The position numbers and the translations under genes are program-made. The notes beneath the pieces were generated by a model. The model made no database searches. It was not told the origin of the DNA and saw only the letters and a program-made list of their open reading frames with translations. A stretch of DNA of 64,000 nt from Octopus bimaculoides (lineage: Eukaryota): positions 6,307,114-6,371,113 of the forward strand of contig NC_068982.1 in the NCBI RefSeq assembly GCF_001194135.2, given 5' to 3'. Positions 5,237-60,539 of the stretch are shown piece after piece. Every line of letters begins with the position of its first letter. The first letter of the stretch is position 1.

Positions 5237-5384
5237 CAGGTTTTATTTCAAGATTTCTTGCTAATATCCTAGATCCAAGGCTCCCCTCATTGGAATTTCA
5301 ACAACATCAACAGGGTATTTTTGTATGTATACGTGCAGATTTATATGCTTTGTTTTATGTATGTACCTTCATTCATGTATGTAT

Positions 5385-6002
5385 CTTGGCGATCTTGGGC
5401 GAGGAAACATTCAAGAAAACCGACTGGATTTGCTTCAAAAAGTGCCAAGTTCACCTGCGACATGACCAGCCTGGTGTGCTTTTGATCCGGCGTCAAAAGT
5501 TGTGGCACCAACCGAGCTGAAACCTTCGACATGCCAAGTTCGTTATGCAAAATGTTCTCAATTCGTTCACGGGAGATGCCTACAGTATTAGCTATCTGAT
5601 TAACATTTAAACGTCTGTCATTCATCACCATGTGGTGAACACGGTCGATGTTTACTTGGGTGGTGACTGTGGCAGGACGTCTGGACCTTGGGTCATCTTC
5701 AATTCAGCTGCCCACTTTTGCATAGTTGATAATACTGGAACTTCAACCCCTAATGTCCTTGGGGGCTAACCCCTTTTTCTGCAGATATTTCGTAACATCA
5801 CGGTGCCAAATTTTATCCATTTTCACGAAATGTCTCTAGTACCAGTTTCCCAAGTCCTCAATTCCGTATCCAATGTGGGTTTTTCTAGAACGAAAACATA
5901 CATTTAGCATCAGTAAAGATTGAATTTAATGCATGCCAAGTTTAATTACTGTATGATAATTCTTTCATAGTCATCCTATGATCTTTCCAGCCCACCCTAG
6001 TA
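5385..6002 (-). mobile_element. Mariner transposon 5' half: TIR plus N-terminal transposase with internal deletions (pseudogene)
   Basis: ATG at 5820: MDKIWHRDVTKYLQKKGLAPKDI, then DDPRSRRPA, MVMNDRRL...ELGMSKVSARLVPQLLTPDQK (WVPxxL linker motif). Truncated before the catalytic domain. TIR-like ta-ctagggtgggctggaaag at about 5983-6002. Confidence 0.92.
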
Positions 6003-6737
6003 TAAACACAGAATGAAGTACTTCCTTCCTTCACTAGTAGAAGCACCTTCTTAGAATCTAAAGCGATATCCAAATAAGGGTAACATGAATTTTCGGCAGC
6101 ACAGGTTTTCATTTCACCTTCCCTTTTCAAATAGTGTTTCTCAAGTAATGTTTCATGAATTTTAAATAATTTCCCATATATAGAAATCTCTCCAAGATGG
6201 ATGAACCTTTAAAAAAAAAATCATCTGAAACGAAATCAAGTTTTATACCTTTTATTTGATCCTCACATCTATGCACAGCTGCACTGCATTACGAAAATGC
6301 TGAGTGGATCAAGTTTGCCTTTAATGGAATAATTATCCCCGAAAATGACTTGGAATATGTTTTTAAAGTAAAGGCGTTCTATTTTGGTTTCAGGGCATAC
6401 ATTCATTCTGCATATATATCAGTGTTCTGTAAGATTTGTAATATGCCACTAAGGCAAAATGTGATATGAAGAGATAATAGTGTATGACGTGAAAAAAATA
6501 TAAGTAATAAAGACCTATCCCTTTAAGAGTTTTCCTCTATCCCTACCAAACCATTATTTGGAACACATAAAGAAGATAATTAGGGTTCGTATTATTTAGT
6601 AGCAAGGACACAGTATTTAGTTTTGCGACCATACTATTCTACCACGTATATTAATATTTTACAAGTCAATATTGAGCTTTACTTGTGTGTTAGCAGTGCG
6701 TTGTCTTCATTTTTAATTTTATCTCCACAGATTTTCT

Positions 6738-7147
6738 GCAGGAGCGGCTGTGTGGTAAGTAGCTTGCATACCAACAACATGGTTCCGGGTTCAGTCCCAC
6801 TGCGTGGCAGCTTGGGCAAGTGTCTTCTACTATAGCCTCGGGCCGACCAAAGCCTTGTGAGTGGATTTGGTAGACGGAAAGTGAAAGAAGCCCGTCGTAT
6901 ATATGTATATGTATATATATATATATGTGTGTGTGTGTGTTTGTGTGTCTGTGCTCCCCCCACCCCCCATAACATCGCTTGACAACCGATGCTGGTGTGT
7001 TTATGTCCCCGTAACTTGGCGGTTCGGCAAAACAGACCGATAGAATAAGTACTAGGCTTACAAAGAATAATTCCTGGGGTCGATTTGCTCGACTAAAAGT
7101 GGTGCTCCAGCATGGCCGCAGTCAAATGACTGAAACAAATAAAAGAG
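6738..7147 (+). mobile_element. SINE family B (tRNA-like head, internal TA/TG microsatellite), full length
   Basis: ggctgtgtggtaag A box, gggttcagtccc B box, tail gctccagcatggccgcagtcaaatgactgaaac; imperfect flanking direct repeat atctc(c/t)acaga. Confidence 0.92.
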
Positions 7148-9552: not shown

Positions 9553-9789
9553 TTTCGGCTGGTTATACTCGAGATTGCTCCAGTCTGGCTAATATACGGC
9601 AAGAAGAAAATGGAGGGGATCCAGAGGTAGTATGCATCAACTGTTAGACATTATATTATCTCAATTTATTTATTTTAAACAATTATGAGAATATATATAC
9701 ATGTGTAAAGATTGTTATACATAAATAAGTACCAGTAATTTCTAGAGTAGAGAAAGAAGAACAGTTTCTTACAGCGTCGTATATTTATA

Positions 9790-10017
9790 TAGGCATACAT
9801 GTTTGTGTGTCCATGTTTGTCTCCTCCCCCGCCACCATTGCTTGACAACCGATGCTGGTGTGTGTACGTCCCCGTAACTTAGCGTTTCGATAAAAGAGAC
9901 CGATATAATAAGTACTAGGCTTACAAAGAATGAGTCCCGGGGGGGGGGGCGATTTGCTCGACTAGAGGTGGTACTCCAGCATGGCCGCAATCAAATGACT
10001 GAAATAAATAAAGGAGT
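9790..10017 (+). mobile_element. SINE family B 3' half
   Basis: gcttgacaaccgatgctggtgtg...aagtactaggcttacaaagaat...ccagcatggccgcaatcaaatgactgaaa. Confidence 0.88.
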
Positions 10018-10701
10018 AAAAGATAGATATATATATATATATATATACATATATACACATATACATATACATACATATACAGAGAGAGAGAGAGGGGGAG
10101 GGACGGAGAGAATGACATGAACTATTATGTACTGCGTTCTCTACAATCTGAGTTCAAATTGACATTATTTGCCGAAATGAATAAAAACAATTTGCACCAG
10201 TTATGCACTGGATGTATTTTGATAGGCTACCATTCCAATTGTATGTGAAACATTGTGCAAATATTAGAAATCAATGTTCATCATTTAATGTGGAAGAGCG
10301 CATTCAGCCAAATCGCTGCAGCACCGGACAACCCATTGAAACATCCGCAATTTAATATCCTCTCATCGATAATTCTTTCGGTTTCCTAGGATTTGTAATT
10401 GTAATCATAAACTGAAAAGCAAACTCATAAATTATGTCACATGCCGCATGACGAATTGTGATGTGACATTTCGAAACTCACCCTTCATCTCAGAGAACAA
10501 AAGTAAATTACTTTATACGAATGGATAGTACTGAAAATGTATTATGTATAAAGAGATGCTGAAGAGAGGGAGAGAAAACATACAAAGCGAAGCTTGTCAT
10601 AGGTAGCAGAGCGTGGACGTATATGCTCTTTATAGTTCTAATTAGTTACTAACCCTATATGCTGGAATATTTCACTATGAAATAATCAGGTAATTCAACC
10701 G

Positions 10702-12211: not shown

Positions 12212-12654
12212 CAATAGTGACTACATGAATACCACTATCACCTATTATTCTCTTTAAATTCCTTTCATTTCACTTTATTCTGTTTACTTTGTTCTTTTTA
12301 CATTATCTTACTTTACCTCCTCTCTCCTTATTTACCCTTATATGTTTATTCATTTATTTATCTTCTTGGTTATTTTTATACACTATGTTCTTAGACGCTA
12401 TATCTTTATATACCTTATTTTATCCTTAACGCCAATCCTTAATTTCCTCCCTCACTCTCTCTACTCCTAGTTCTAATTACTCATTTTTCTTTCTTTTTAC
12501 CACTTAATAGCCATTCTGCTACCATTCTGTTATTGAACGTTGATATGTTCGTGTCTGTTTCTGGATATTTACACTATCAGAACTTTAACCTACATGGATT
12601 TACATAGGATTGCACCTAAGGACTTTTGGACTTACTTCTATATGTTATTTACAT

Positions 12655-12857
12655 AATTTACATTTGATGGATATTTGTCCGCCTTTTGTTTGTTGTTAAC
12701 ACAACGTTTCGGCTGATATCCTCTCCAGCCTTCACCAGGTGTCATGGGAAAATTTTCAACCGGGGTTCTCATTCCTAAAGTATTTTAGATCTTGTTATTA
12801 TTATTATTATTGAGGTCACTGCTTGGAATCGAACTCGGAATCTTGGGGTTAGTAGCC
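12655..12857 (-). mobile_element. SINE-like family D (tRNA head, AAT tract, HHR-bearing tail), head 5'-truncated
   Basis: Matches copies at 24112, 44319 and 59243; the HHR core reads CUGGUGA (A6G). Confidence 0.88.
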
Positions 12858-12862
12858 TAGTA

Positions 12863-13078
12863 GCCGCCCTATTATCCAGAGTTCTTGTCCGGTACAGGAT
12901 CGATCGCAAAATCTAAACGGTTCCTGCCAGTCACGAGGCCAAACATCCCTGAAAGTTTCATCAGAATCCATCCAGCAGTTCTTGAGATATCATGTCGATG
13001 GACAAACGAACAAACAAACGCGACTGAAAACAATACCTCCACCTTAGTGAAGGCAGAGGTAATAATAATGAAATACCA
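12863..13078 (+). mobile_element. Probable Helitron/Helentron-type non-autonomous element 3' end
   Basis: aagtttcatcagaatccatccagcagttcttgagatatc...acaaacaaacgcgactgaaaacaata followed by a terminal hairpin tacctccaccttagtgaaggcagaggta (13034-13061), restorable to a perfect stem by reverting two CpG-type changes. Resembles HINE/DINE-like ends as I recall them. Confidence 0.55.
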
Positions 13079-21919: not shown

Positions 21920-24111
21920 NNNNNNNNNNNNNNNNNNNNNNNNNNNNNNNNNNNNNNNNNNNNNNNNNNNNNNNNNNNNNNNNNNNNNNNNNNNNNNNNN
22001 NNNNNNNNNNNNNNNNNNNNNNNNNNNNNNNNNNNNNNNNNNNNNNNNNNNNNNNNNNNNNNNNNNNNNNNNNNNNNNNNNNNNNNNNNNNNNNNNNNNN
22101 NNNNNNNNNNNNNNNNNNNNNNNNNNNNNNNNNNNNNNNNNNNNNNNNNNNNNNNNNNNNNNNNNNNNNNNNNNNNNNNNNNNNNNNNNNNNNNNNNNNN
22201 NNNNNNNNNNNNNNNNNNNNNNNNNNNNNNNNNNNNNNNNNNNNNNNNNNNNNNNNNNNNNNNNNNNNNNNNNNNNNNNNNNNNNNNNNNNNNNNNNNNN
22301 NNNNNNNNNNNNNNNNNNNNNNNNNNNNNNNNNNNNNNNNNNNNNNNNNNNNNNNNNNNNNNNNNNNNNNNNNNNNNNNNNNNNNNNNNNNNNNNNNNNN
22401 NNNNNNNNNNNNNNNNNNNNNNNNNNNNNNNNNNNNNNNNNNNNNNNNNNNNNNNNNNNNNNNNNNNNNNNNNNNNNNNNNNNNNNNNNNNNNNNNNNNN
22501 NNNNNNNNNNNNNNNNNNNNNNNNNNNNNNNNNNNNNNNNNNNNATATATGCATGTATGCATGTATGTATGTACACATACATACATTTATTATATTATAT
22601 ATTTATTCACTTTTTCTCCTTTCTAAAAACTAAAAACCTGGTACCGAGATGATTTATATTTCTAGAAAATTTCTATAGTATTTATTTCGTAAATTTATTA
22701 GAACGTTTTTATTTTAGGTCTTACTTAACATATTTAGTGAAAAGTTTATCACTTTAGAATTTGAACTTATGATGTTTAACTTCGTAGCCCAATATAATCA
22801 CCAAGCATCGCACATTACACGGCCATTATATCACTTGAGATCATCAAATTAGTTTTATTTTTGGAACGATTTGTGTTTAACCTCATCAGGTATTGCTTTA
22901 TCGTGATTTTGTTTGTGAAACAATTTCATTTGCTATAATGTTCGTCACTAATGAGATACGAAGATGTATAATCTCTGGGGACCTCCTAATAGATTTTAAC
23001 CTCAGGCTAGAGATTTAAAACAGAAAAAGGAATATCTGGAGATAAAATGGACTGAGTGAATAATTCTGTTTCAGTATTTCACCTTCAATTCACAGCAATC
23101 AAGAACGCATATCGGAACCTCGCACTCCTAAATCAGAATTGATTGTTTTCTGCATTCTGAGTCCTAATTAGCTATTTGCTTCCGACTCATAATCGTTACG
23201 ATCATTTGTGGCTCACTCTTCAGATCTCAAGCAGAGATGAGCCAAAACGTGTCAAAACGTTTCTTACAAAACCTCTATTTGCTATGAATTTTCTCAAAAA
23301 ATATCAATTAATGTAATCTTTCAAACCATTATATTGAATCGACTGATTTTGTGAAATTACAAAACTTTTTGTACAACATTTCAATTTATGATTGATTTGT
23401 TGTTGATTAGGCTAAACTATACCCAGTTGATCATTACCACATCTTAATAAAAAAAAATTACTTGAGATTACAGCTTCATAAAATGATTTGCAACGTCTTT
23501 GAAATATTCTTCATACAAACAATTTTCAATCTAACAAAAGTGTCTTAACTAAGTTAGAATGGATTTTATTACTTATTGCCATCAATAAACTTTCATTTGA
23601 GCGTATACATTCCTCCTTCCTCCGTTGTTAAAGCCTGAGTAGGCTAGAGTAAATTTTGAAGCAATTGTTTAATATAAGTCTTAAATTACATTTATATTTA
23701 TTTCACTTACTATCTGTAAACTTTGCCTTTTACATTAAAATATTCGGATTAAATAATGCAATCGGAACTTTTCTCTAATTCGGCCGCTTAGTACGCTTAT
23801 GTTTTTTTAGATTTGTCAGCATTAAAATAACTAGAGTTTTTATTATTTTTAAATTCATTCGAAGCAAAAGTAAAACGATGGCACGACAAAAGTGACTCTA
23901 GCTTCAGCAGTGAATCTACTAAATTTGATAGCTCCTTCTTCGATTTCGAAGATGAACACTCAGTTGTTCGATTAACTGAAGTACATAATCATTAAAATAG
24001 GTTGTAAGTGACTGAGTATTCCAAAGACATATTTAGCGTTTCCATAATTCTAGGCCGAATCAGCATAAGTTTGAACACAGGTCGAATCTGTGCGACAAGT
24101 ATCAGTGCTAC

Positions 24112-24356
24112 ATTATTTACATTTGACGGATATTTGTCCTCATCTTGTTTGTTGTTAACACAACATTTTGGTTGATATACCCTCCAGCTTTCATCAGGTG
24201 TCTTAGGGAAATTTCGAACCTGGGTTCTCATTCCTAAGGTATTTCTCGATGATGATATTATTATTATTATTATTATTCAGGTCACTGCCTGAAATTGAAC
24301 TTGGAATCTTGGGGTTAGTAGCCCGCGCTCTTAACTACTACGCTATATGCCTGTGG
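24112..24356 (-). mobile_element. SINE-like family D, full head plus tail
   Basis: Head reverse complement ccacaggcatatagcgtagtagttaagagcgcgggctactaaccccaag; HHR at 24157-24202 with G12A and C15.2U changes. Confidence 0.9.
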
Positions 24357-24369
24357 GTAATTATGGAGT

Positions 24370-24571
24370 GAATAATAATAACAATAACATCGAAAAATAC
24401 CTTAGAAATGAGAACTCAGGTTCGAAATTTCTCCGAGACACCTGATGAAAGCTGGAGGGTATATCAGCCGAAACGCTGTGTTAACAACAAACAAGATGAG
24501 GTCAAATATCCATCAAATGTAAATAATGTACATAATTTCTCATCTCTTAAATATAGAACTGAAGTATCAGC
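24370..24571 (+). mobile_element. Family D tail without head, inverted relative to the adjacent copy
   Basis: AAT/AAC tract, then catcgaaaaataccttag...gacacCTGATGAaagctggagggtatatcagccGAAAcgctgtgtt (HHR 24437-24482). Confidence 0.9.
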
Positions 24572-25249
24572 GCTGTTTCCGTCCAAGGATTTTACTCACA
24601 AGGACTGGGGAGACCTGAGGCTAGGGTTTAAAGTTATCGTGCAGTGGGATCGAACGCTACATCTCTTGACTGTGTTTCTAAATTTGTAACCACTGGGCCA
24701 TACCTGCGTCCACTGTACTGAATGCACAATAAAAGAAAAAATAAGAAATAAGAAAAGGACAAGGGTACATTAAAATGTAAATTCATCCCAAAAAGACAGT
24801 GAGAGAGAAGGAGAGAAAGTGAGAAAGAGAAAGAGAAGAAGAGAGAGTGGGAGAGAAGGAGACAAGGGGAAGAGAGAGATACAGAAGAATTCAAAGGAAG
24901 AGGGTAAAGAATGGCACTTTGATCATTTTGCTCTCTAAAAATTTCTGTTCAAGTTTATTTATATTGGAAATGTCTATTTTTTCTTGAGAACTTATTCAAT
25001 AGAATAAGACTGCTCAATCTGCATTCATTCAGAATGCTTCTTTGATCACTGAAAAGAAATCCTTTTGAGAGATAAAAATCATTGCTTGCCATTGCAATTA
25101 GTTACCAGAAAAACCAATTCCATTACTTTAGTGACCTCAACATTAGGAAAACAAGATTTAAAGTTATTGAAAACTCCTGGTCATCTTGATCACTAAAAGC
25201 GATCCAAAATATAACACAATTGCAGAAAATATTTTCTTTATTCCTGTAA

Positions 25250-27944: not shown

Positions 27945-28285
27945 AAGTAGCTGCGTGGTAAGTAGCTTGCTTCCCAGCCACATGGTTCCGGGTTCAGTCA
28001 CACTGCGTGGCACCTTGGGCAAGTGTCTTCTACTAAAGACTTGTGAGTGGATTTGGTAGACGGAAACTGAAAGAAGCCCGTCGTGTATATGTATGCATGT
28101 GTGTATCTGTGTTTGTCTCCCATCATCGCTTGACAACCGATGTTAGTGTGCTTACGTCTCATCAAAAGAGATCGATAGATTAAGTACTAGGCTTACAAAG
28201 AATAAGTCCTGGGGTTGATTTCTTCGACTAAAGGCGGTGCTGCAGCATGGCCGCAGTCACATGACTGAAACAAGCAGAAGAGTAA
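27945..28285 (+). mobile_element. SINE family B with small internal deletions
   Basis: Head, body and tail match the 6738-7147 copy. Confidence 0.9.
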
Positions 28286-28520
28286 AACGAATTTTAATTG
28301 GTAAGATATAAGAATAGACAGAACAAACATATAAGCGAACCAACTCAACAGGGGTTTTTCTTTCCACGTCAATTAAAAAGAAAGGAGACATTAATGTCTA
28401 GAGGAAGACATTTGCAAATTCAGAAACAGAAATTAATATAAAGTGTAAGACTCACACAAACGCACCCAAAGAAACAGACACACAACACACAAATATATAT
28501 ATACGCACACATATGCATCA

Positions 28521-36359: not shown

Positions 36360-37060
36360 ATTTATATCATTATATGATCGAATGCCACGCATCCATTTCC
36401 AAGTAAGTTTTATCTTAATAATTCCGATGCGACACTATTCTATCACTATCTGTTTCTCTCTCTCTTCTTCCTTCTATATTCTTTTTTCTCTCCCACCATT
36501 CCTCTAATTCTTCTCCTCCCCTTAACCATTCTCTATCTGTCCCTCACTCTTCCTCCTTGACTTTCGCATTGCTCACACGTGACCAGCGGCCATCTTTCTT
36601 CTCCTAACTCGAATTCCTTTCTTTCTTCTCGTTCAGCTACAAGGGAAGCTCGCATTTTTGTCTGTCTTTTGTCAAAGCTTGTTTCTCCAGCGTTTTCCAC
36701 TTCACCTCGTTATGGCTTAACAGCCCTTACCTTTGTTTTAACTGTCCTGTTTTTGTTACTATCTTCGACCGTCCGCAAATCGCAAATTTTATTTAATTTG
36801 CTTTGCGGAAGCAGTTGTTTTTGACGAAGAATCATCTTGTCCTAACGCTCGAAATCCGGAGTAGATAAAACAGTGGACAACTGATGAAGGGATTGTTCTT
36901 TATGTCGCCTGTCTGGTCTTTCTATTTGTTTCTTTCGATGTTCACAAAAAGAATTCGTTTTCCATGTTTTTGTATTTCATGTTCTCATTTTTCATGTTGT
37001 TTACATTTTTTTGATGTCCTGTACCCATATATGCATGTGTCTATACATATATGTGTAGGT
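36360..37060 (+). mobile_element. Probable Penelope-like terminal-repeat remnant with degenerate HHR-like motif (36815-36870)
   Basis: Pyrimidine-rich tract, then ttgacga-a-gaat...gctc-GAAA-tccgga-GTA-gataaaacag. Confidence 0.45.
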
Positions 37061-37064
37061 ATGT

Positions 37065-37468
37065 ACATGTAGGTATGTGTGATAAGTAGCTTGCTAACCA
37101 ACCATGGTCCTGGGTTCAGTCCCACTGCATAGTATCTTGGACAAGTGTCTTCTACTATAGCCTCGGGCCAACTGAAGCCTTGTGAGTGGAATTGGTAGAC
37201 GGAAAATGAAAGAAGCCCATCGTATATATGTATATATATATGTGTGTGTGCGTGCGTGTGTATATGTTTGTGTGACTGTGTCCCTCCCCCCAGCATCGCA
37301 TCACAACCAATGCTGGTGTGTTTACGTTCCCATAACTTAGCAGTTTGGCCAAAGAGACCAAAAGAATAAGTATTAGGCTTACAAAGAATAAGCTCTGGGG
37401 TCGATTTGCTCGACTAAAGGCGGTGCTCCAGCATGGCCGTATTCAAATGACTGAAACAAATAAAAGAG
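37065..37468 (+). mobile_element. SINE family B
   Basis: Matches the 6738-7147 copy along its length. Confidence 0.9.
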
Positions 37469-38545: not shown

Positions 38546-38960
38546 TAGGCATAGGTGAAGTTGTGTGGCGAGAAGATTCCTTTCCAACCACATACTCTTA
38601 GGTTCATTCATTTGCCTCGCACTTTGGGAAAGTCTCTTCCACTATAACACCTGGGGCCGACCAAATCCTTTTGAGTGGATTTGGAAGACGGAAACTGGAA
38701 GAAGCCCGTCGTATATAAATGTATACCGATGTGTGTGTGCGTGGGGGTATGTCTGTATTTGTCCCCCACCACTGCTTGATTACCTGAGGTGATAATCTGT
38801 TTATGTCTCAGTAACTTAGCGTTTCGGCAAAAAGAGACAGACAGAACAAGTGCCAGTCTTAAAAAATAAGTACTGTAATCGATTCATTCGACTAAAATTC
38901 TTCAAGGTGGTGATCCAGCATGGCCACATCTAATGACTGAAACAAGTAAAAGAATGAAAG
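38546..38960 (+). mobile_element. SINE family B variant
   Basis: Diverged head; tail variant gactaaaattcttcaaggtggtgatccagcatggccac. Confidence 0.85.
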
Positions 38961-39084
38961 AATGAAAGAATACGGTGCATGCGTAAAATGTCTACACTAC
39001 AACATTGTTCCGCATCTCATAATGGTACATTATAAATTCCTCTGAATGTTGATGCTTTACCTGTGTATGAGAAGACATGAAGAC

Positions 39085-44318: not shown

Positions 44319-44393
44319 CCACGGGCATGTAGCGTAGTGGTTAAGAGAACGGGCTATTAACCTCAAGATTCCGAGTTCGATTCCAGGCAGTGA

Positions 44394-44473
<80 letters not shown>

Positions 44474-44722
44474 GTCTCTTGAGGTCTCTGGGTGAGACTT
44501 GGATCCAACTTGTACAAATGCAAAACAAAAGTTAAACATAAAATAATAATAATAACAACAACAACATCGAAAAATACCTTAGGAATGAGAACCCAGGTTA
44601 GAAATTTCCCCAAGACACCTGATGAAGGCTAGAGGGTATATCAGCTGAAACGTTGTGTTAACAACAAACAAGATGAGGAAAAATATACGTCAAATATAAA
44701 TAATGTAAATAATGTACATAAC
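44319..44722 (+). mobile_element. SINE-like family D, complete copy with extra ~70 bp module
   Basis: tRNA-like head 44319-44397 (A box tagcgtagtgg, B box gagttcgattcc), (AAT)25, module 44473-44540, tail with HHR 44614-44659. Confidence 0.92.
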
Positions 44723-44734
44723 TATTTGTTGTTC

Positions 44735-45083
44735 ATGTAACATATGAAGTTTGCTTCCCACATAGATCCTGACTCAGTCCCACTGCATGGTACCTTGGAC
44801 AAGTGTCTTTTTACTATATCCCCGGCCGACGAAAGCCTTATAAATGGATTTGGTAGGCAAAAACTGAAAGAAGCCCATCGCATACGTGCGCGCGCGTGTG
44901 TGTCTTTGTGTTTGTGTATTTACTCCTCCGTAACTTAGTGGTTCGGCAAAAGAGACTGCTAGAATAAGTACCTGATTTAAAAAAATAAATACTTTGTCGA
45001 TTTATTCGACTAAGATTCTTCAAGGTAGGGCTCCAGCATGGCCGCAGTCTAATGACTGAAACAAGTAAAAGATAAAAGATAAG
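44735..45083 (+). mobile_element. SINE family B variant
   Basis: tcagtcccactgcatggtaccttggacaagtgtc...gctccagcatggccgcagtctaatgactgaaacaagtaaaagataaaagat. Confidence 0.85.
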
Positions 45084-45221
45084 GTGTGAAAGCAAGGATC
45101 TATATTGAACGTTCGTCTTCTCTCTCTCTAAAAGTCAATATTTCACCTCAACAATTTTTTAAAGATAATATTTTGTTTAATTTTGTTGATTAAGTTTTAT
45201 TTACAAATGCTTGAAGTCGGA

Positions 45222-46970: not shown

Positions 46971-47131
46971 AGGCGCAGGTGTGGCTGTGTGGTAAGAAGC
47001 TTGCTTTCCAACCACATGACTCAGGGTTCAGTCCACTGCGTGGCATTTCGAGTGAGTGTTTTCTATAGCCTCAGGCCGACCAAAGCCTTGTGAGTGGATT
47101 TGGTAGATGAAAACTGAAAGAATCCCGTCAA

Positions 47132-47199
<68 letters not shown>

Positions 47200-47731
47200 T
47201 TATATATAACGATGACCACTAAAGTGGACATTTAATGTGCTAGAAGAAGATCACATGTTGTGTCTACTAAGACCTAATGGTTCTCAAAAGAAATTCAGCG
47301 AAATACCAAACCGTATGCGGGCAAGACAATGAAAATTACATAAATAAAACATTATTATTCATGCATCGGTTTCGAAATTAACACTCTTACCGAATATCTG
47401 TTTCTCTTCAGCATGAATTGTAAGGAAATCATATTTCTCAGAATCTTATACAAGTTGTTAACCCCTAGAGGCAAACATGTATATGGTTCTGCTAATTACA
47501 ACTTAATGGCAAAAATCATATAAATATATTTATGTGTATGTCTGTGATTGTCCCCCCTCCCGCTCTCGCTTGACGACCGATGTTGGTGTTTATGTCCACG
47601 AAACTTAGCGGTTCGGCAACAGTGACTGATAAGTACAAGGCTTACAAAGAATAAGTCCTGGGGTCGATTTCTTCGACTATAGGCGATGCTCCAGCATGGC
47701 CACAGTCAAATGACTGAAACAAGTAAAAGGA
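46971..47731 (+). mobile_element. SINE family B split by a ~310 bp insertion in its central microsatellite
   Basis: 5' half 46971-47135; 3' half resumes ~47520 (ctcgcttgacgaccgatgttgg...). Confidence 0.88.
47205..47520 (-). mobile_element. Penelope-like terminal fragment with HHR-like motif at 47357-47418
   Basis: Minus strand: attcatg-CTGAAGA-gaaa-(23 nt)-tttc-GAAA-ccgatg-catgaat. Confidence 0.65.
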
Positions 47732-49621
47732 AAAGAACAAAAGAATTAAGACTTGTTCATAAATTGATGCCACATATAGCACTAGGTGGTTGGAGCTTCA
47801 AGCAAAGACAAAGTATTTCAAATATGGTCCAGGAAGGGTCGACTGGAATGATTAACTTCTTAAAGAAGCTTTACAACTTAAGCAAAACCATTTTTAATGG
47901 CAAAATGTTTGCAATGACGATCTGTAGCCATTTTTTCCGGCTCACTTCTATTGCGATATTATTATCAATCATAACACATGCGTCATTTGTTTCCTCCAAC
48001 ACAATTACTCCTCAAACCCATGTTATTGCTGACCCGTACCAAGCCCAATCTGTCAGCCAAACATCCATGAATCTACCATGTAGACGCCTGTCCTGAGGCT
48101 GGATTCCTTTCGGAGTCATCTCCCACCTTATACCGCAACCACTTCAGTACAACTTCCAAATCTGCTGGTGGAAGCGTATATACATATCGGTGTATATGTA
48201 CATGTGTGTCTGAAAATGAGGATATAAATGCATGTGTATATGCAAGCATGCGTCTATGCGATACTGTGTATATGTTCATGTGAGCTATTCTGATAAGGCC
48301 GTTTGTTATTTTCTGAACTGTCACATATTTGAACATATACGAGTGACTGTTAATGTTTTAGTATTCATTGTATGATTATCTTTTCTTTCCGTGTATATCT
48401 TAGTTACCATTGATGATTGAATATTTCAGTCATTCAAATTCATGAATATTCTATGGTTGTCTTTATCTTTGAATTGTTATTTTTTTTAAAATTATCTTTT
48501 TGCTTCCCGTTCCATCTATTTCTTAGTTTTTCTTAAACTTCTCACCTTATTTGAAATCTTATTTGCAACATTGGCTCTTTCTACTTTAATTCATAGCTTC
48601 TCTCTATGTTCACTTCACATGCTATTTTTCTTTCTTTCGACCTTTCCACCCCTCTTTCTCCTCGTCGTTAATTTAATTTTTACCATAAATCTGCGACATA
48701 TATCCCAGTTGATAACATCATCTTTTTACCTTTTCTTCATTCCAAACCTCAAAAACGTTAGATTTTCCACTACTCACAACAGCTGAACGTATTCTAGGAA
48801 ATCACATTGATTAAATTGTTTCCAACATATGCTATCACATGTTTCCACCTGTTCCAGATTCTATCCTCTAGTTATAAAAACAATTTAAATTCTACCATGC
48901 TGTTAGAATTCGGCTCACTTCTATTGCGATATTATTGCCAATCATAACACAATAGTTGCTAAGAAAAACTGCAGTTCATATTGAAACTCTTTAGCAATGC
49001 ATTTCATATGGATTTTCATTGGACCACATATTACAGAAGAAATACTGAATTTGAGAATTAATCCAAATCTAAATACCTTTAGTAGATGAGCTTGTCACTC
49101 TTATCTGGAGAGATCTAGAGGAGCTTACCTCAATAAAATTAAGATTATAACTCACAATGGCTTTTGACACACTTCCAACTATAAGTGAAATCGGCTTGCT
49201 GTCTGTGAGTATTAAAGATCTCTGAAGTAACCCTGATAGAACTATCAGAGTTAATCCCGCAGACGGTGTCTTATCAAACTCTGTTAAATCTACTGAAGCT
49301 TGAACATCCAGTCTCTGACCATGTATTACCACTGGATCTAAGGGGTTTAGACGACTCAGAGCCAGATTGGTTTCACACAACATTTGTAATAAGCGCTTGT
49401 TTTGAAGCCATCATTTCTCCTACTGTTTACTAGACATAGTAATTTCAGTTTTAAAGAGGGAGCGGGGTTTTGTTAGAATTTAACTCTTTAATGGTATTAC
49501 TGAAATAAAACAGAAGTCGTTCTGTGTTAATATACAAAACTAGCATATCGGGCAGAATATGTAGCGGCCATTTTTTCCGGCTCTATACATTCTGAGTTCA
49601 AATATAGCAGTGGTCGACTTT

Positions 49622-58778: not shown

Positions 58779-59242
58779 GACGATATGTGGTACTTATTGA
58801 TTCACTGATTGCTTCCTTAAATCAAGATACGATAATAACTCAGAGTAAATGTTTATCAAGTGATATTTCTTTCTTCCACCATGATATGACCTTTATCATG
58901 AACTGAAATATTTCTCCGTTTTCTGTAAATTGTGAACACATCACCTGATGACTGGATGCTCAGCTAATTGTTAAGCATTTAATGGTAATTTCATATTAAT
59001 TACGTCGCACATCACATCATTCTGAATCAGCTGTTTTCCAATTACATTAACAGCCAAATAATATACTCGTTCATTCAATAGTCAACTTGCCTTAGGTATT
59101 TGCCTTTTTGTTTATCAGTTGCAATCAATCTCTTTACATACGTCATTACTTGTAGTTCCGTTGTTCAAGTGGCAGATTTCAAGAACTTGTTTTCAAATTT
59201 ACTTTTCATTAGATTCCAGACCATTTCAGATATAAAGAACCT

Positions 59243-59387
59243 TATTTACATTATTAACGTTTGATGGATATTTGTCCTCATCTTGTTTGTTGTTAACACA
59301 ACGTTTCGGCTGATATACCCTCCAGCCTTCATCAGGCGTCTTGGAGAAATTTCTAACCTGGGTTCTCATTCCTAAGGTATTTTTTGA

Positions 59388-59421
<34 letters not shown>

Positions 59422-59500
59422 TTATGTTTGACTTTTGTTTTGCATTTGTACAAGTTGGATCCAAGTCTCACCCAGAGACCTCAAGAGACAACAAGTTAGA
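59243..59500 (-). mobile_element. SINE-like family D (extra-module subtype), head hidden in gap
   Basis: Tail, AAT tract and the same ~70 bp module as at 44473; runs into the N gap. Confidence 0.9.
59295..59340 (-). ncRNA. Putative minimal type I hammerhead ribozyme with intact catalytic core
   Basis: Minus strand: GACGC-CUGAUGA-A-GGCUG-gaggguauau-CAGCC-GAA-ACGU-U|GUGUU. Stem I 5 bp (2 G-U), stem II 5 bp, palindromic ACGU stem III, GUU cleavage triplet. Activity untested. Confidence 0.75.
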
Positions 59501-60241
59501 NNNNNNNNNNNNNNNNNNNNNNNNNNNNNNNNNNNNNNNNNNNNNNNNNNNNNNNNNNNNNNNNNNNNNNNNNNNNNNNNNNNNNNNNNNNNNNNNNNNN
59601 NNNNNNNNNNNNNNNNNNNNNNNNNNNNNNNNNNNNNNNNNNNNNNNNNNNNNNNNNNNNNNNNNNNNNNNNNNNNNNNNNNNNNNNNNNNNNNNNNNNN
59701 NNNNNNNNNNNNNNNNNNNNNNNNNNNNNNNNNNNNNNNNNNNNNNNNNNNNNNNNNNNNNNNNNNNNNNNNNNNNNNNNNNNNNNNNNNNNNNNNNNNN
59801 NNNNNNNNNNNNNNNNNNNNNNNNNNNNNNNNNNNNNNNNNNNNNNNNNNNNNNNNNNNNNNNNNNNNNNNNNNNNNNNNNNNNNNNNNNNNNNNNNNNN
59901 NNNNNNNNNNNNNNNNNNNNNNNNNNNNNNNNNNNNNNNNNNNNNNNNNNNNNNNNNNNNNNNNNNNNNNNNNNNNNNNNNNNNNNNNNNNNNNNNNNNN
60001 NNNNNNNNNNNNNNNNNNNNNNNNNNNNNNNNNNNNNNNNNNNNNNNNNNNNNNNNNNNNNNNNNNNNNNNNNNNNNNNNNNNNNNNNNNNNNNNNNNNN
60101 NNNNNNNNNNNNNNNNNNNNNNNNNNNNNNNNNNNNNNNNNNNNNNNNNNNNNNNNNNNNNNNNNNNNNNNNNNNNNNNNNNNNNNNNNNNNNNNNNNNN
60201 NNNNNNNNNNNNNNNNNNNNNNNNNNNNNNNNNNNNNNNNN

Positions 60242-60318
60242 ATATCAGCCGAAACGTTATGTTAACAACAAACAAGATGAGGACAAATATCCGTCAATTG
60301 TAAATAATGTAAATAATA
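60242..60318 (+). mobile_element. Family D tail end, inverted relative to 59243-59500
   Basis: atatcagccgaaacgttatgttaacaacaaacaagatgaggacaaatatccgtc immediately after the gap. Confidence 0.88.
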
Positions 60319-60364
60319 TGATAATTCCAAATGTCTTAAAATTAAAACTGTATTATATAAAGAA

Positions 60365-60539
60365 CCGAAATTTTGGGAGAGGGTGCCAGTCGATTAGAGC
60401 GACCCCAGGACGCTAGTGGTACTTAATTTATCGACTCTGAAAGGATGAAAGGCAAAGTCGACCTCGGCGGAATTTGAACTCAGAACGTAAACACAGACGA
60501 AATACCGCTAAGCATTTTGCCCGGCGTGCTAACGTTTCT
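60365..60539 (-). mobile_element. SINE family A lacking its 5' ~20 bp
   Basis: Reverse-complement copy cut at gctaacgtttct by the next element. Confidence 0.88.

Follow-up and report, generated by a model that had tools for sequence, protein, structure and literature searches.

Which machinery copies a short interspersed element (SINE) that has a tRNA-type head and a hammerhead ribozyme motif in its tail? The question is raised by an element at 44319-44722 (c44), the reference copy of what is here called family D, in a stretch of 64,000 nucleotides (nt) of Octopus bimaculoides DNA (GCF_001194135.2, contig NC_068982.1, positions 6,307,114 to 6,371,113 of the forward strand), hereafter the window. 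The first-pass annotation had described c44 as a head of RNA polymerase III (Pol III) type, an (AAT)n stretch, an optional module of about 70 bp that recurs near 59424-59490, and a hammerhead tail, and had counted six such tails in 64 kb. The sequence reads as described, and all six tails were found by BLAST. Our conclusion is that family D is probably a tRNA-headed SINE that uses the machinery of Penelope-like elements (PLEs) rather than that of a long interspersed element (LINE).

Composition of the family D element

Window copies were located by BLAST with head, middle and tail queries (coordinates in Table 1). The head carries an A box and a B box, and the combined A/B-box pattern matched only c44 and 24291-24345 (minus strand) in the whole window, with no match in 100 shuffles; the B box was also found in the copy at 12 kb (c12). 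ARAGORN at thresholds of 100-80% found no cloverleaf in the head, and the Rfam tRNA model gave no match to it at E <= 10. Because both tests were negative, the head is called tRNA-derived by its promoter boxes only. Degenerate heads that have lost the cloverleaf are common among SINEs.

The (AAT)n linker occupies the identical junction in every copy that reaches that far, and the tail starts at the same base, ATCGAAAAATACC, in 5/5 copies. Heads are visible in three copies (c44, c12 and the minus-strand copy at 24 kb, c24m). Neither an A-rich nor a LINE-matching tail was seen, as within the window the tail matches its own family alone and its 3′ end reads ...AGAACTG. The consensus has no T4 terminator, and the first run of T lies 90-110 nt downstream.

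The optional module sits within the (AAT)n linker and has a small hairpin of its own (gtctc...gagac). It is 98.6% identical between c44 and the copy at 59 kb (c59), far closer than the tails of the same two copies (about 91%), and could be a subfamily marker or a separate insertion.

A minimal type I hammerhead in the tail

The consensus of the motif over the six copies is GACAC CUGAUGA A GGCUGG AGGGUAUA UCAGCC GAAA CGUU GUGUU. Helix I (GACAC/GUGUU) has 5 bp, and helix II (GGCUGG/UCAGCC) has 6 bp with G10.1-C11.1 as the closing pair. The catalytic core (C3 U4 G5 A6 N7 G8 A9...G12 A13 A14...A15.1-U16.1 H17) is complete in the consensus, in c59 and also in c44, save for a G.U pair at 10.1/11.1 where C11.1 has become U by CpG decay. 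Helix III is absent: C15.2 G16.2 U16.1 U17 follow GAAA directly, and A15.1-C-G-U16.1 form a 4-nt palindrome.

Minimal type I hammerheads of PLEs were reportedly described by Lunse, Weinberg and Breaker in 2017. In the published survey, G10.1-C11.1, palindromic positions 15.2-16.2, and helices II and I with lengths of 6-8 and 4-5 bp, respectively, emerged as PLE traits outside the search descriptor (PMC4209133). Family D has the extra nucleotide after A9, G10.1-C11.1, a long helix II, a short helix I and the palindromic ACGU and, to judge from its sequence, the consensus shows all PLE minimal-hammerhead traits of that survey. This agrees with the class proposed before. A strict PLE-type descriptor and a relaxed one both gave no match in 20 Mb of order-1 Markov sequence with the same composition as the window, and the analytic estimate for the strict descriptor is about 0.1 occurrences per 2.7-Gb genome. 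These statistics exclude a chance resemblance.

In the consensus, the fold with helices I and II lies within 0.6 kcal/mol of the minimum free energy (MFE), and single copies have ordinary folding z-scores (-2.0 to +0.2). The cells of the helices are paired in 93% of cases among window copies and in 82% over 15 copies, compared with 18-48% for slid partners. An intact core is kept by 2/6 copies (44619-44659 and 59335-59295), and in the remaining copies the core is inactivated by single changes: c12 has A6>G, c24m has G12>A, its plus-strand partner at 24 kb (c24p) has U16.1>C, and both copies at 24 kb have G10.1>A.

A second structure occurs at the same place. The hairpin GUUGU-GUUA-ACAAC (44652-44665 in c44) lies at the same site in all six copies, covers both the predicted site of cleavage and the 3′ strand of helix I, and excludes the hammerhead fold because of this overlap. 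It is in the MFE structure of 4/5 window copies folded, and in the distant relatives described below a comparable hairpin with a longer loop can be drawn. Such a hairpin might act as a conformational switch.

Inverted twins inside one target-site duplication

Two head-to-head inverted pairs account for four of the six tails, and each pair is one insertion with a 12-bp target-site duplication (TSD). In the pair at 24 kb, c24m and c24p lie on opposite strands with 26 bp between them and have two derived bases in common that are absent from the other copies. Their arms (24109-24268 and 24371-24530) are 160 nt long and 90% complementary, and are flanked by AAGTATCAG[T/C]GC repeats. The other pair, c59 and the copy at 60 kb (c60), is arranged head to head across an assembly gap at 59501-60241, which is straddled by its arms (59242-59316 and 60242-60316). 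The first-pass annotation had seen no clear TSD. The two duplications had been overlooked because they flank pairs, and a view of single copies misses them.

In both twins the left repeat exactly adjoins the 3′ end of the minus-strand copy, and the right repeat begins 31 or 37 nt past the apparent 3′ end of the plus-strand copy. The two segments in between are homologous, with 23/30 identical positions in an ungapped alignment, a score that was reached by 0/2000 shuffles. A 34-nt extension of c12 is partly homologous to them (p=0.006 against that of c60). The same segment is translated (...NVNNVHNSSSLKYRTI) at the end of the O. bimaculoides UniProt entry A0A0L8FV75 (P0001), which is a spurious open reading frame (ORF) across another family D copy, and it is found in the Logan contigs L004, L005 and L015. 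Given this homology and the recurrence in other loci, the element has its true 3′ terminus in this extension (...AAATATAGAACTG), which is absent from one arm of each twin. When the null was taken from real window sequence without positional constraint, repeats as good as the two TSDs had P=0.055 and P=0.015; since one repeat must in addition abut an element end in both units, chance is negligible.

Two further ideas on the 3′ end were rejected. Reading the extension as a terminal redundancy, that is, as a copy of the 5′ leader and head, gave a similarity no better than shuffles. For c44, the six bases after the tail, CATAAC (44717-44722), may be the first bases of the extension, and a homologous extension there is unsupported (similarity test, p>0.19).

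PLE insertions are known for frequent 5′ truncation, for an inverted and 5′-truncated copy adjoining the 5′ end, for an extension (tail) of 30-40 bp at one end only, and for the assembly problems that result (PMC8557442). PLE hammerheads have likewise been reported as pairs on opposite strands, 100-700 bp apart (PMC4209133). The twin structure observed here is the published PLE insertion signature.

A different reading takes family D as an ordinary LINE-dependent tRNA SINE, with a tail that comes from a LINE 3′ untranslated region holding a hammerhead-like sequence by coincidence or by an earlier capture, and with inverted pairs that are due to twin priming by the LINE. Octopus has abundant and active RTE, CR1 and Dong-R4 LINEs, the short tandem repeats (GTAAATAAT)n at the 3′ end of family D resemble many tails of CR1/L2/RTE type, and Pfam found no PLE partner among window ORFs of at least 74 aa. 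L1 is known to undergo twin priming. However, twin priming of one RNA yields non-overlapping segments, whereas both twin arms hold the same 3′ region with an overlap of 160 nt. In addition, a one-sided conserved extension together with partial tandems has been described as PLE-specific (PMC8557442), no PLE minimal-hammerhead trait is missing from the motif, and the tail matches nothing else in the window. We consider LINE dependence unlikely.

Relatives of the tail outside the window

Exact-pattern scans with a conserved 22-mer gave 0 matches in metagenome, viral and prokaryote collections, which contain no cephalopods. Relatives were instead reached through an accidental ORF that runs through the tail. 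A HMMER scan with the c24p ORF gave 43 representative proteins, and the profile built from these found 2389 proteins in two groups. This sampling favors less decayed tails and has no bias toward the presence of a head; because the ORF anchor is located in the tail, the external sample is blind to the head. The sample comprised the six window copies and about fifteen external copies.

Group 1, from Logan assemblies of the runs SRR11869384-94, is similar to the octopus tail, extension included, and is 70-81% identical to family D at the DNA level. L004 contains a complete solo element with tRNA-like head, AT-rich linker, tail with CUGACGA...GAAACGUU, and extension, while L006 is a further head-to-head pair. 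In L005, L015 and L016 the module follows partly different tRNA-like heads, and over these five contigs (L004, L005, L006, L015, L016) it stands behind at least three kinds of tRNA-like head.

Group 2 lies on large contigs of ENA analysis ERZ21867824 and NCBI assembly GCA_052426985.1 and is a different SINE. L003 has a solo element of tRNA-like head, body and hammerhead module (caCCUGAAGA-A-GGCCGG-AGGACAUA-UCGGCC-GAAA-CGUU|GUGg), which terminates in ...AAATTTAGACAAC. In L001, L002 and at least 10 ORFs the module is repeated head to tail with a 129-nt period (2-3 units; 43-aa period in the ORFs), and these repeats, as judged from their sequence, are partial tandems like those of PLE pseudo-long terminal repeats (pLTRs). 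The unit in L001 is composed of an inverted 5′ part with the head, a 5′-truncated module and a full module, and is enclosed by a 15-bp TSD, TAAACTACATTAAGT. Comparison of L001 (20 kb) with the window found no other repeat in common, which indicates that its host is not close to octopus. The supposition that the family is confined to cephalopods therefore has to be given up, as at least one other eukaryote also has the module and has no other repeat in common with the window.

The linkage of head and tail is the point at which one further explanation has to be weighed, namely that the two are separate elements and that short PLE-derived units, such as a solo pLTR or a retrozyme-like unit, insert into the (AAT)n of a simple tRNA SINE. 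PLEs are biased toward insertion into microsatellites (PMC8557442), the junction of head and tail is always a microsatellite, the (AAT)n can also be occupied by the optional module (c44, c59), and group 2 includes tandem arrays of the module without a head per unit. On the other hand, head and tail were linked in every evaluable copy, in agreement with the first-pass annotation: their strands agree in 3/3 window copies, and a head or B box lies upstream on the same strand in 6/6 evaluable tails of external contigs. No tail-less head of family D type occurs in the window. Moreover, the tail start is fixed (5/5), whereas PLE copies are usually 5′-truncated variably; the head of c24m lies inside the TSD-bounded unit; and the tail is not followed by an AAT repeat, which a TSD made in the microsatellite would require. 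Independent insertion of the tail is thus improbable, and we keep to one element with two parts.

The way in which the relatives were found has a side effect. At least 2389 database proteins (ENA, NCBI, Logan and one UniProt entry) are spurious translations of the hammerhead module, and form a recognizable contaminant family in protein databases.

Two sequence details were seen next to group 2 elements. In L001 the flanking repeat (9760-9787 and 10226-10253) runs past the 15-bp TSD, and the 13 nt that precede the left TSD (AAAAATAGCAAAT) look like the 3′ end of the element itself (AAATTTAGACAAC). This likeness, which is not seen at the two octopus twins, hints at priming via microhomology between target and template. 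In L003, a perfect 19-nt tandem duplication, AAGTTACACTCGTTTCATG, with a spacing of 21 (9833-9872), lies directly 5′ of the solo full-length relative and has no counterpart on the 3′ side; it may be an aberrant target duplication.

Conservation of the hammerhead

Fifteen copies from the three groups (octopus, group 1 and group 2) were aligned. Between octopus and group 2, identity was 79% in the hammerhead, 65% in the next 45 nt, 26% upstream and 20% at the 3′ end; between group 1 and group 2 the corresponding values were 67%, 53%, 24% and 37%. The hammerhead is therefore the best-conserved segment in both comparisons with group 2. Within it, each core position other than N7 was kept in at least 12/15 copies and the extra A in 15/15. 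N7, the free position of the core, varies (U in 9, C in 3 and A in 3 copies): octopus has U, group 2 has A, and three Logan copies have C. That only N7 varies is the strongest sequence evidence we have, and it suggests that what the active lineages conserve is the hammerhead itself.

At the fourth pair of helix II octopus has U-A and group 2 has C-G, and both changes are CpG transitions. Compensatory selection on this pair was rejected, since the counts of its states among 117 protein-inferred units (RR 49, WR 21, RQ 15, WQ 7) fit independent CpG decay.

A number of results weigh against a working ribozyme or against mobilization by PLEs. Between octopus and group 1, the hammerhead is no better kept than the next 45 nt (73% versus 75%, with 54% upstream and 30% at the 3′ end). 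Covariation of the stems, proposed in the first-pass annotation as a check, was not significant: window copies hold 0 compensatory pairs, and across groups three pairs changed on both sides, not above shuffles. The Rfam hammerhead model (RF00163), proposed likewise, left the motif unscored, with nothing at the gathering score in the 64 kb and nothing at E <= 10 in 551 bases; this miss is expected, because the models require the helix III that the motif does not have, and membership in the minimal class is not excluded by it. Within the copies, the hammerhead has about 5% substitutions compared with 4-7% in the flanking tail (hand count on the alignment). With such similar rates the inserted copies decay neutrally, as expected of dead SINE copies, and this says nothing on the master copy. 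PLE minimal hammerheads cleave weakly in vitro (PMC4209133), and cleavage at GUU|G would part the head from the 3′ piece of about 105 nt that is needed for priming, which makes it hard to see a role in processing.

As to the machinery, the Pfam scan of window ORFs of at least 74 aa found neither a reverse transcriptase nor a GIY-YIG domain, and no autonomous PLE and no ORF for either activity was found beside the fetched relatives. For the solo copies c44 and c12, the TSD search gave only candidates of 5-8 bp, none of them convincing, and direct tandem (pLTR) copies are absent among the six window copies. The three clear targets (AAGTATCAGCGC, ATATAAAGAACC and TAAACTACATTAAGT of L001) are unique sequence without a microsatellite bias, a weak criterion, as that bias is clade-specific among PLEs.

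Some of these results would also suit the view that the sequence resembles a hammerhead by chance or as a non-catalytic relic, and that its conservation has a different cause, for example that it serves as a protein-binding site or as a hairpin recognized by the reverse transcriptase. The absence of both covariation and an Rfam match, the weak cleavage by PLE minimal hammerheads in vitro, the competing hairpin over the cleavage site and the proliferation of Naiad PLEs without hammerheads all favor it. Chance, however, is excluded by the descriptor statistics, the core varies across lineages only at the free position, and it is the hammerhead that is best conserved between the two most distant groups. 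A relic or chance resemblance is accordingly very unlikely in our view.

Proposed mobilization by PLE machinery

We hold it likely that family D is a two-part non-autonomous element, made of a tRNA-derived head and a PLE-derived hammerhead module, which is mobilized by PLEs. The element is about 250-400 nt long, with a degenerate tRNA-derived head holding internal Pol III A and B boxes, an (AAT)n linker and a 3′ module of about 190 nt. The last 140 nt or so of this module, from hammerhead to 3′ end, would have a counterpart in the 3′ end or pseudo-LTR of a PLE, which would probably be their source. Pol III would transcribe from the head through the whole element, in whose consensus there is no T4 terminator. 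The reverse transcriptase and GIY-YIG endonuclease of a PLE would then recognize the 3′ module and copy it by target-primed reverse transcription. If both nicked target strands prime, on two template molecules, one at the true 3′ end (...AGAACTG) and the other about 31 nt further in, within the GTAAATAAT repeats, the product would be head-to-head twins inside one 12-bp TSD with the terminal extension on one side. Recently active PLEs are available in the genus, with 31 families in O. vulgaris (PMC13282606).

That PLEs and not LINEs mobilize the element was already suggested in the first-pass annotation. The twins in one TSD, the one-sided extension and the pLTR-like tandems of the relatives support this part, while the autonomous PLE with a matching 3′ end that should go with it was not found in the window or beside the relatives.

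The role of the hammerhead is the weakest link of the model. Any activity of the ribozyme would be that of a dimer held together by the ACGU palindrome. We favor the possibility that it is retained because the PLE machinery needs the RNA module for recognition or processing, over self-cutting of each SINE RNA, because self-cutting would sever the head, helix III is impossible in a single copy, and cleavage in vitro is weak.

A broader generalization is tentative, and we lean somewhat against it. The module of about 130-140 nt from hammerhead to 3′ end might be a portable cassette that recruits the PLE reverse transcriptase and has been captured repeatedly by tRNA heads in distant animals. Family D would then belong to a ribozyme-marked superfamily of PLE-parasitic SINEs in which the hammerhead is needed in cis, and this would account for many of the orphan minimal hammerheads, which number thousands in the genomes of metazoans.

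Comparison with known systems

The closest analogues are schistosome Sm-alpha and the PLE minimal hammerheads. The latter have in common with family D the CUGANGA/GAAA/UH core without helix III, the palindromic 15.2-16.2, the unpaired nucleotide after A9, G10.1-C11.1, a long helix II and a short helix I. They also occur in thousands of dispersed copies and in opposite-strand pairs a few hundred bp apart, as here. The difference is that there the motif belongs to the pLTR of an element encoding reverse transcriptase, and here to a short element with tRNA-type promoter boxes; PLE minimal hammerheads are not known to have been reported together with a tRNA head. The published dispersed minimal hammerheads were assumed to be truncated PLEs (PMC4209133).

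In schistosomes, the elements Sm-alpha and Sj-alpha are tRNA-derived, high-copy, SINE-like retroposons with a hammerhead on the sense strand (PMC2770079). Compared by description, the hammerhead of Sm-alpha is a canonical type I motif, has helix III and loop-loop contacts and is recognized by Rfam-type searches, unlike the minimal octopus motif that Rfam misses. These elements were reportedly the subject of Ferbeyre et al. in 1998 and Laha et al. in 2000, and to our knowledge no PLE-type insertion signature has been reported for Sm-alpha.

Metazoan non-LTR retrozymes are also non-coding, hammerhead-bearing and proposed to be non-autonomous partners of PLEs (PMC7229834; PMC7761336; the Xenopus preprint of Li, Clavereau and Pollet 2026, 10.64898/2026.07.22.740005). 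The 129-nt head-to-tail arrays of group 2 resemble short retrozymes. In contrast, retrozymes are tandem repeats of 170-400 nt without a promoter of their own (PMC7761336), are expressed as circular RNA and usually have a classical type I hammerhead, whereas the octopus copies of the window lie dispersed or inverted, at no place in direct tandem, and are tRNA-headed with promoter boxes. MRC1 and the non-autonomous Chlamys elements of Chlamydomonas are short and non-coding, share their 3′ end with PLEs and show PLE insertion structures, but have neither tRNA head nor hammerhead (PMC8557442).

Finally, cephalopods have LINE-dependent tRNA SINEs (OK/OR; tRNA-Core, tRNA-Deu), which are similar in the A/B-box head, the length of 250-400 nt, the very high copy number and the 5′ truncation (PMC8967140). 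By description, family D differs from these SINEs, OK, OR1 and OR2 among them, in the ribozyme-motif tail, the twin insertions and the one-sided extension. The OK/OR families of octopus are said to go back to Ohshima and Okada in 1994.

Searchable literature contained nothing that links octopus or cephalopod SINEs to hammerheads or PLEs, in line with the first-pass annotation, which knew of no description of the family as ribozyme-bearing. SINEs make up 11.6% of the O. vulgaris genome, and a curated repeat annotation of this species from 2026 lists 893 unclassified SINE families as recently active, with ribozymes unmentioned (PMC13282606). The family itself may already have a name in Repbase, in Dfam or among the 1994 OK/OR sequences; the apparent novelty lies in reading it as a hammerhead-bearing tRNA SINE that depends on PLEs.

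This reading touches two questions, the role of the PLE minimal hammerheads and the origin of the odd tandem and inverted PLE insertions, and authors in 2014 and 2021 have stated that an experimental system for these hammerheads and insertions is lacking (PMC4209133, PMC8557442). If it is true, a non-coding element of 250 nt with its own promoter, the PLE hammerhead and the PLE insertion signature would be a compact natural substrate for PLE experiments, and the concept of SINEs would gain a third class of autonomous partner. Part of the large unclassified SINE fraction in genomes of octopus would be explained, and many dispersed orphan hammerheads would be re-annotated as SINE tails.

Coordinates and other features of the window

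Table 1. Parts of c44, the other family D copies, and the sequences bordering the insertions; tail positions are those found by BLAST.
Feature	Position	Strand	Remarks
c44 head, tRNA-related	44320-44397	+	A box TAGCGTAGTGG (44330-44340); B box GTTCGATTCC (44375-44384); cloverleaf fold lost
(AAT)n microsatellite, head-tail linker	44398-44473	+	about 25 AAT units
Optional module, about 70 bp	44474-44542	+	recurs at 59418-59489 (-), 72 nt, 98.6% identity (BLAST)
(AAT)4(AAC)4	44543-44566	+	directly after the optional module
c44 tail	44567-44716	+	150 nt; terminates in GTAAATAAT repeats
Minimal type I hammerhead, c44	44614-44659	+	gacac-CUGAUGA-a-GGCUAG-AGGGUAUA-UCAGCU-GAAA-CGUU-guguu; GAAACGUU segment between UCAGCU (helix II 3′ strand) and guguu
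Helix I, c44	44614-18 with 44655-59	+	
CUGAUGA, c44	44619-25	+	extra A at 44626
Helix II, c44	44627-32 with 44641-46	+	
GAAA and ACGU, c44	44647-50 and 44650-53	+	
Predicted cleavage site, c44	between 44654 and 44655	+	
c12	12611-12892	-	diverged head, (AAT)n, tail (12796-12636), 34-nt extension (12644-12611); oldest copy, 84% identity; hammerhead about 12743-12698, A6->G
Tentative TSD, c12	12900-12893 and 12610-12601		ATCCTGTA / ATCCTATGTA
c24m, full-length	24109-24369	-	head boxes 24345-24291, (AAT)n, tail (24270-24109); without 3′ extension; hammerhead about 24202-24157, G10.1->A, G12->A
c24p, 5′-truncated inverted twin	24371-24530	+	begins within (AAT)n; tail 24383-24530; hammerhead about 24437-24482, G10.1->A, U16.1->C
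Left TSD, 24-kb twin	24097-24108	+	AAGTATCAGTGC; abuts 3′ end of minus-strand copy
3′ extension, 24-kb twin (PLE-style tail)	24531-24561	+	31 nt, CATAATTTCTCATCTCTTAAATATAGAACTG
Right TSD, 24-kb twin	24562-24573	+	AAGTATCAGCGC
c59	59242-59500	-	tail (59394-59242), (AAT)n, optional module; 5′ end enters gap 59501-60241; hammerhead 59340-59295 fully intact
c60	60242-60354	+	3′ tail half (60242-60317) and 37-nt extension (60318-60354); 5′ part in gap
Left TSD, 59/60-kb twin	59230-59241	+	ATATAAAGAACC
3′ extension, 59/60-kb twin	60318-60354	+	37 nt
Right TSD, 59/60-kb twin	60355-60366	+	ATATAAAGAACC, 12/12 identical

The window holds another SINE-like family (A/B of the first-pass annotation), which is far more abundant, with at least 8 partial copies (44748-45134, 6682-7146, 36988-37467, 38611-38961, 27964-28287, 47028-47736 and others), one of which begins about 30 bp downstream of c44. 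The minus strand holds a remnant of a mariner-like transposase at 5344-5703.

The assembly has 12 runs of N in the 64 kb, and the 741-N gap at 59501-60241 falls exactly between the arms of a twin. Twin insertions may be a recurrent cause of gaps in this assembly, and with one of the two twins here on a gap they are a practical warning for assemblers.

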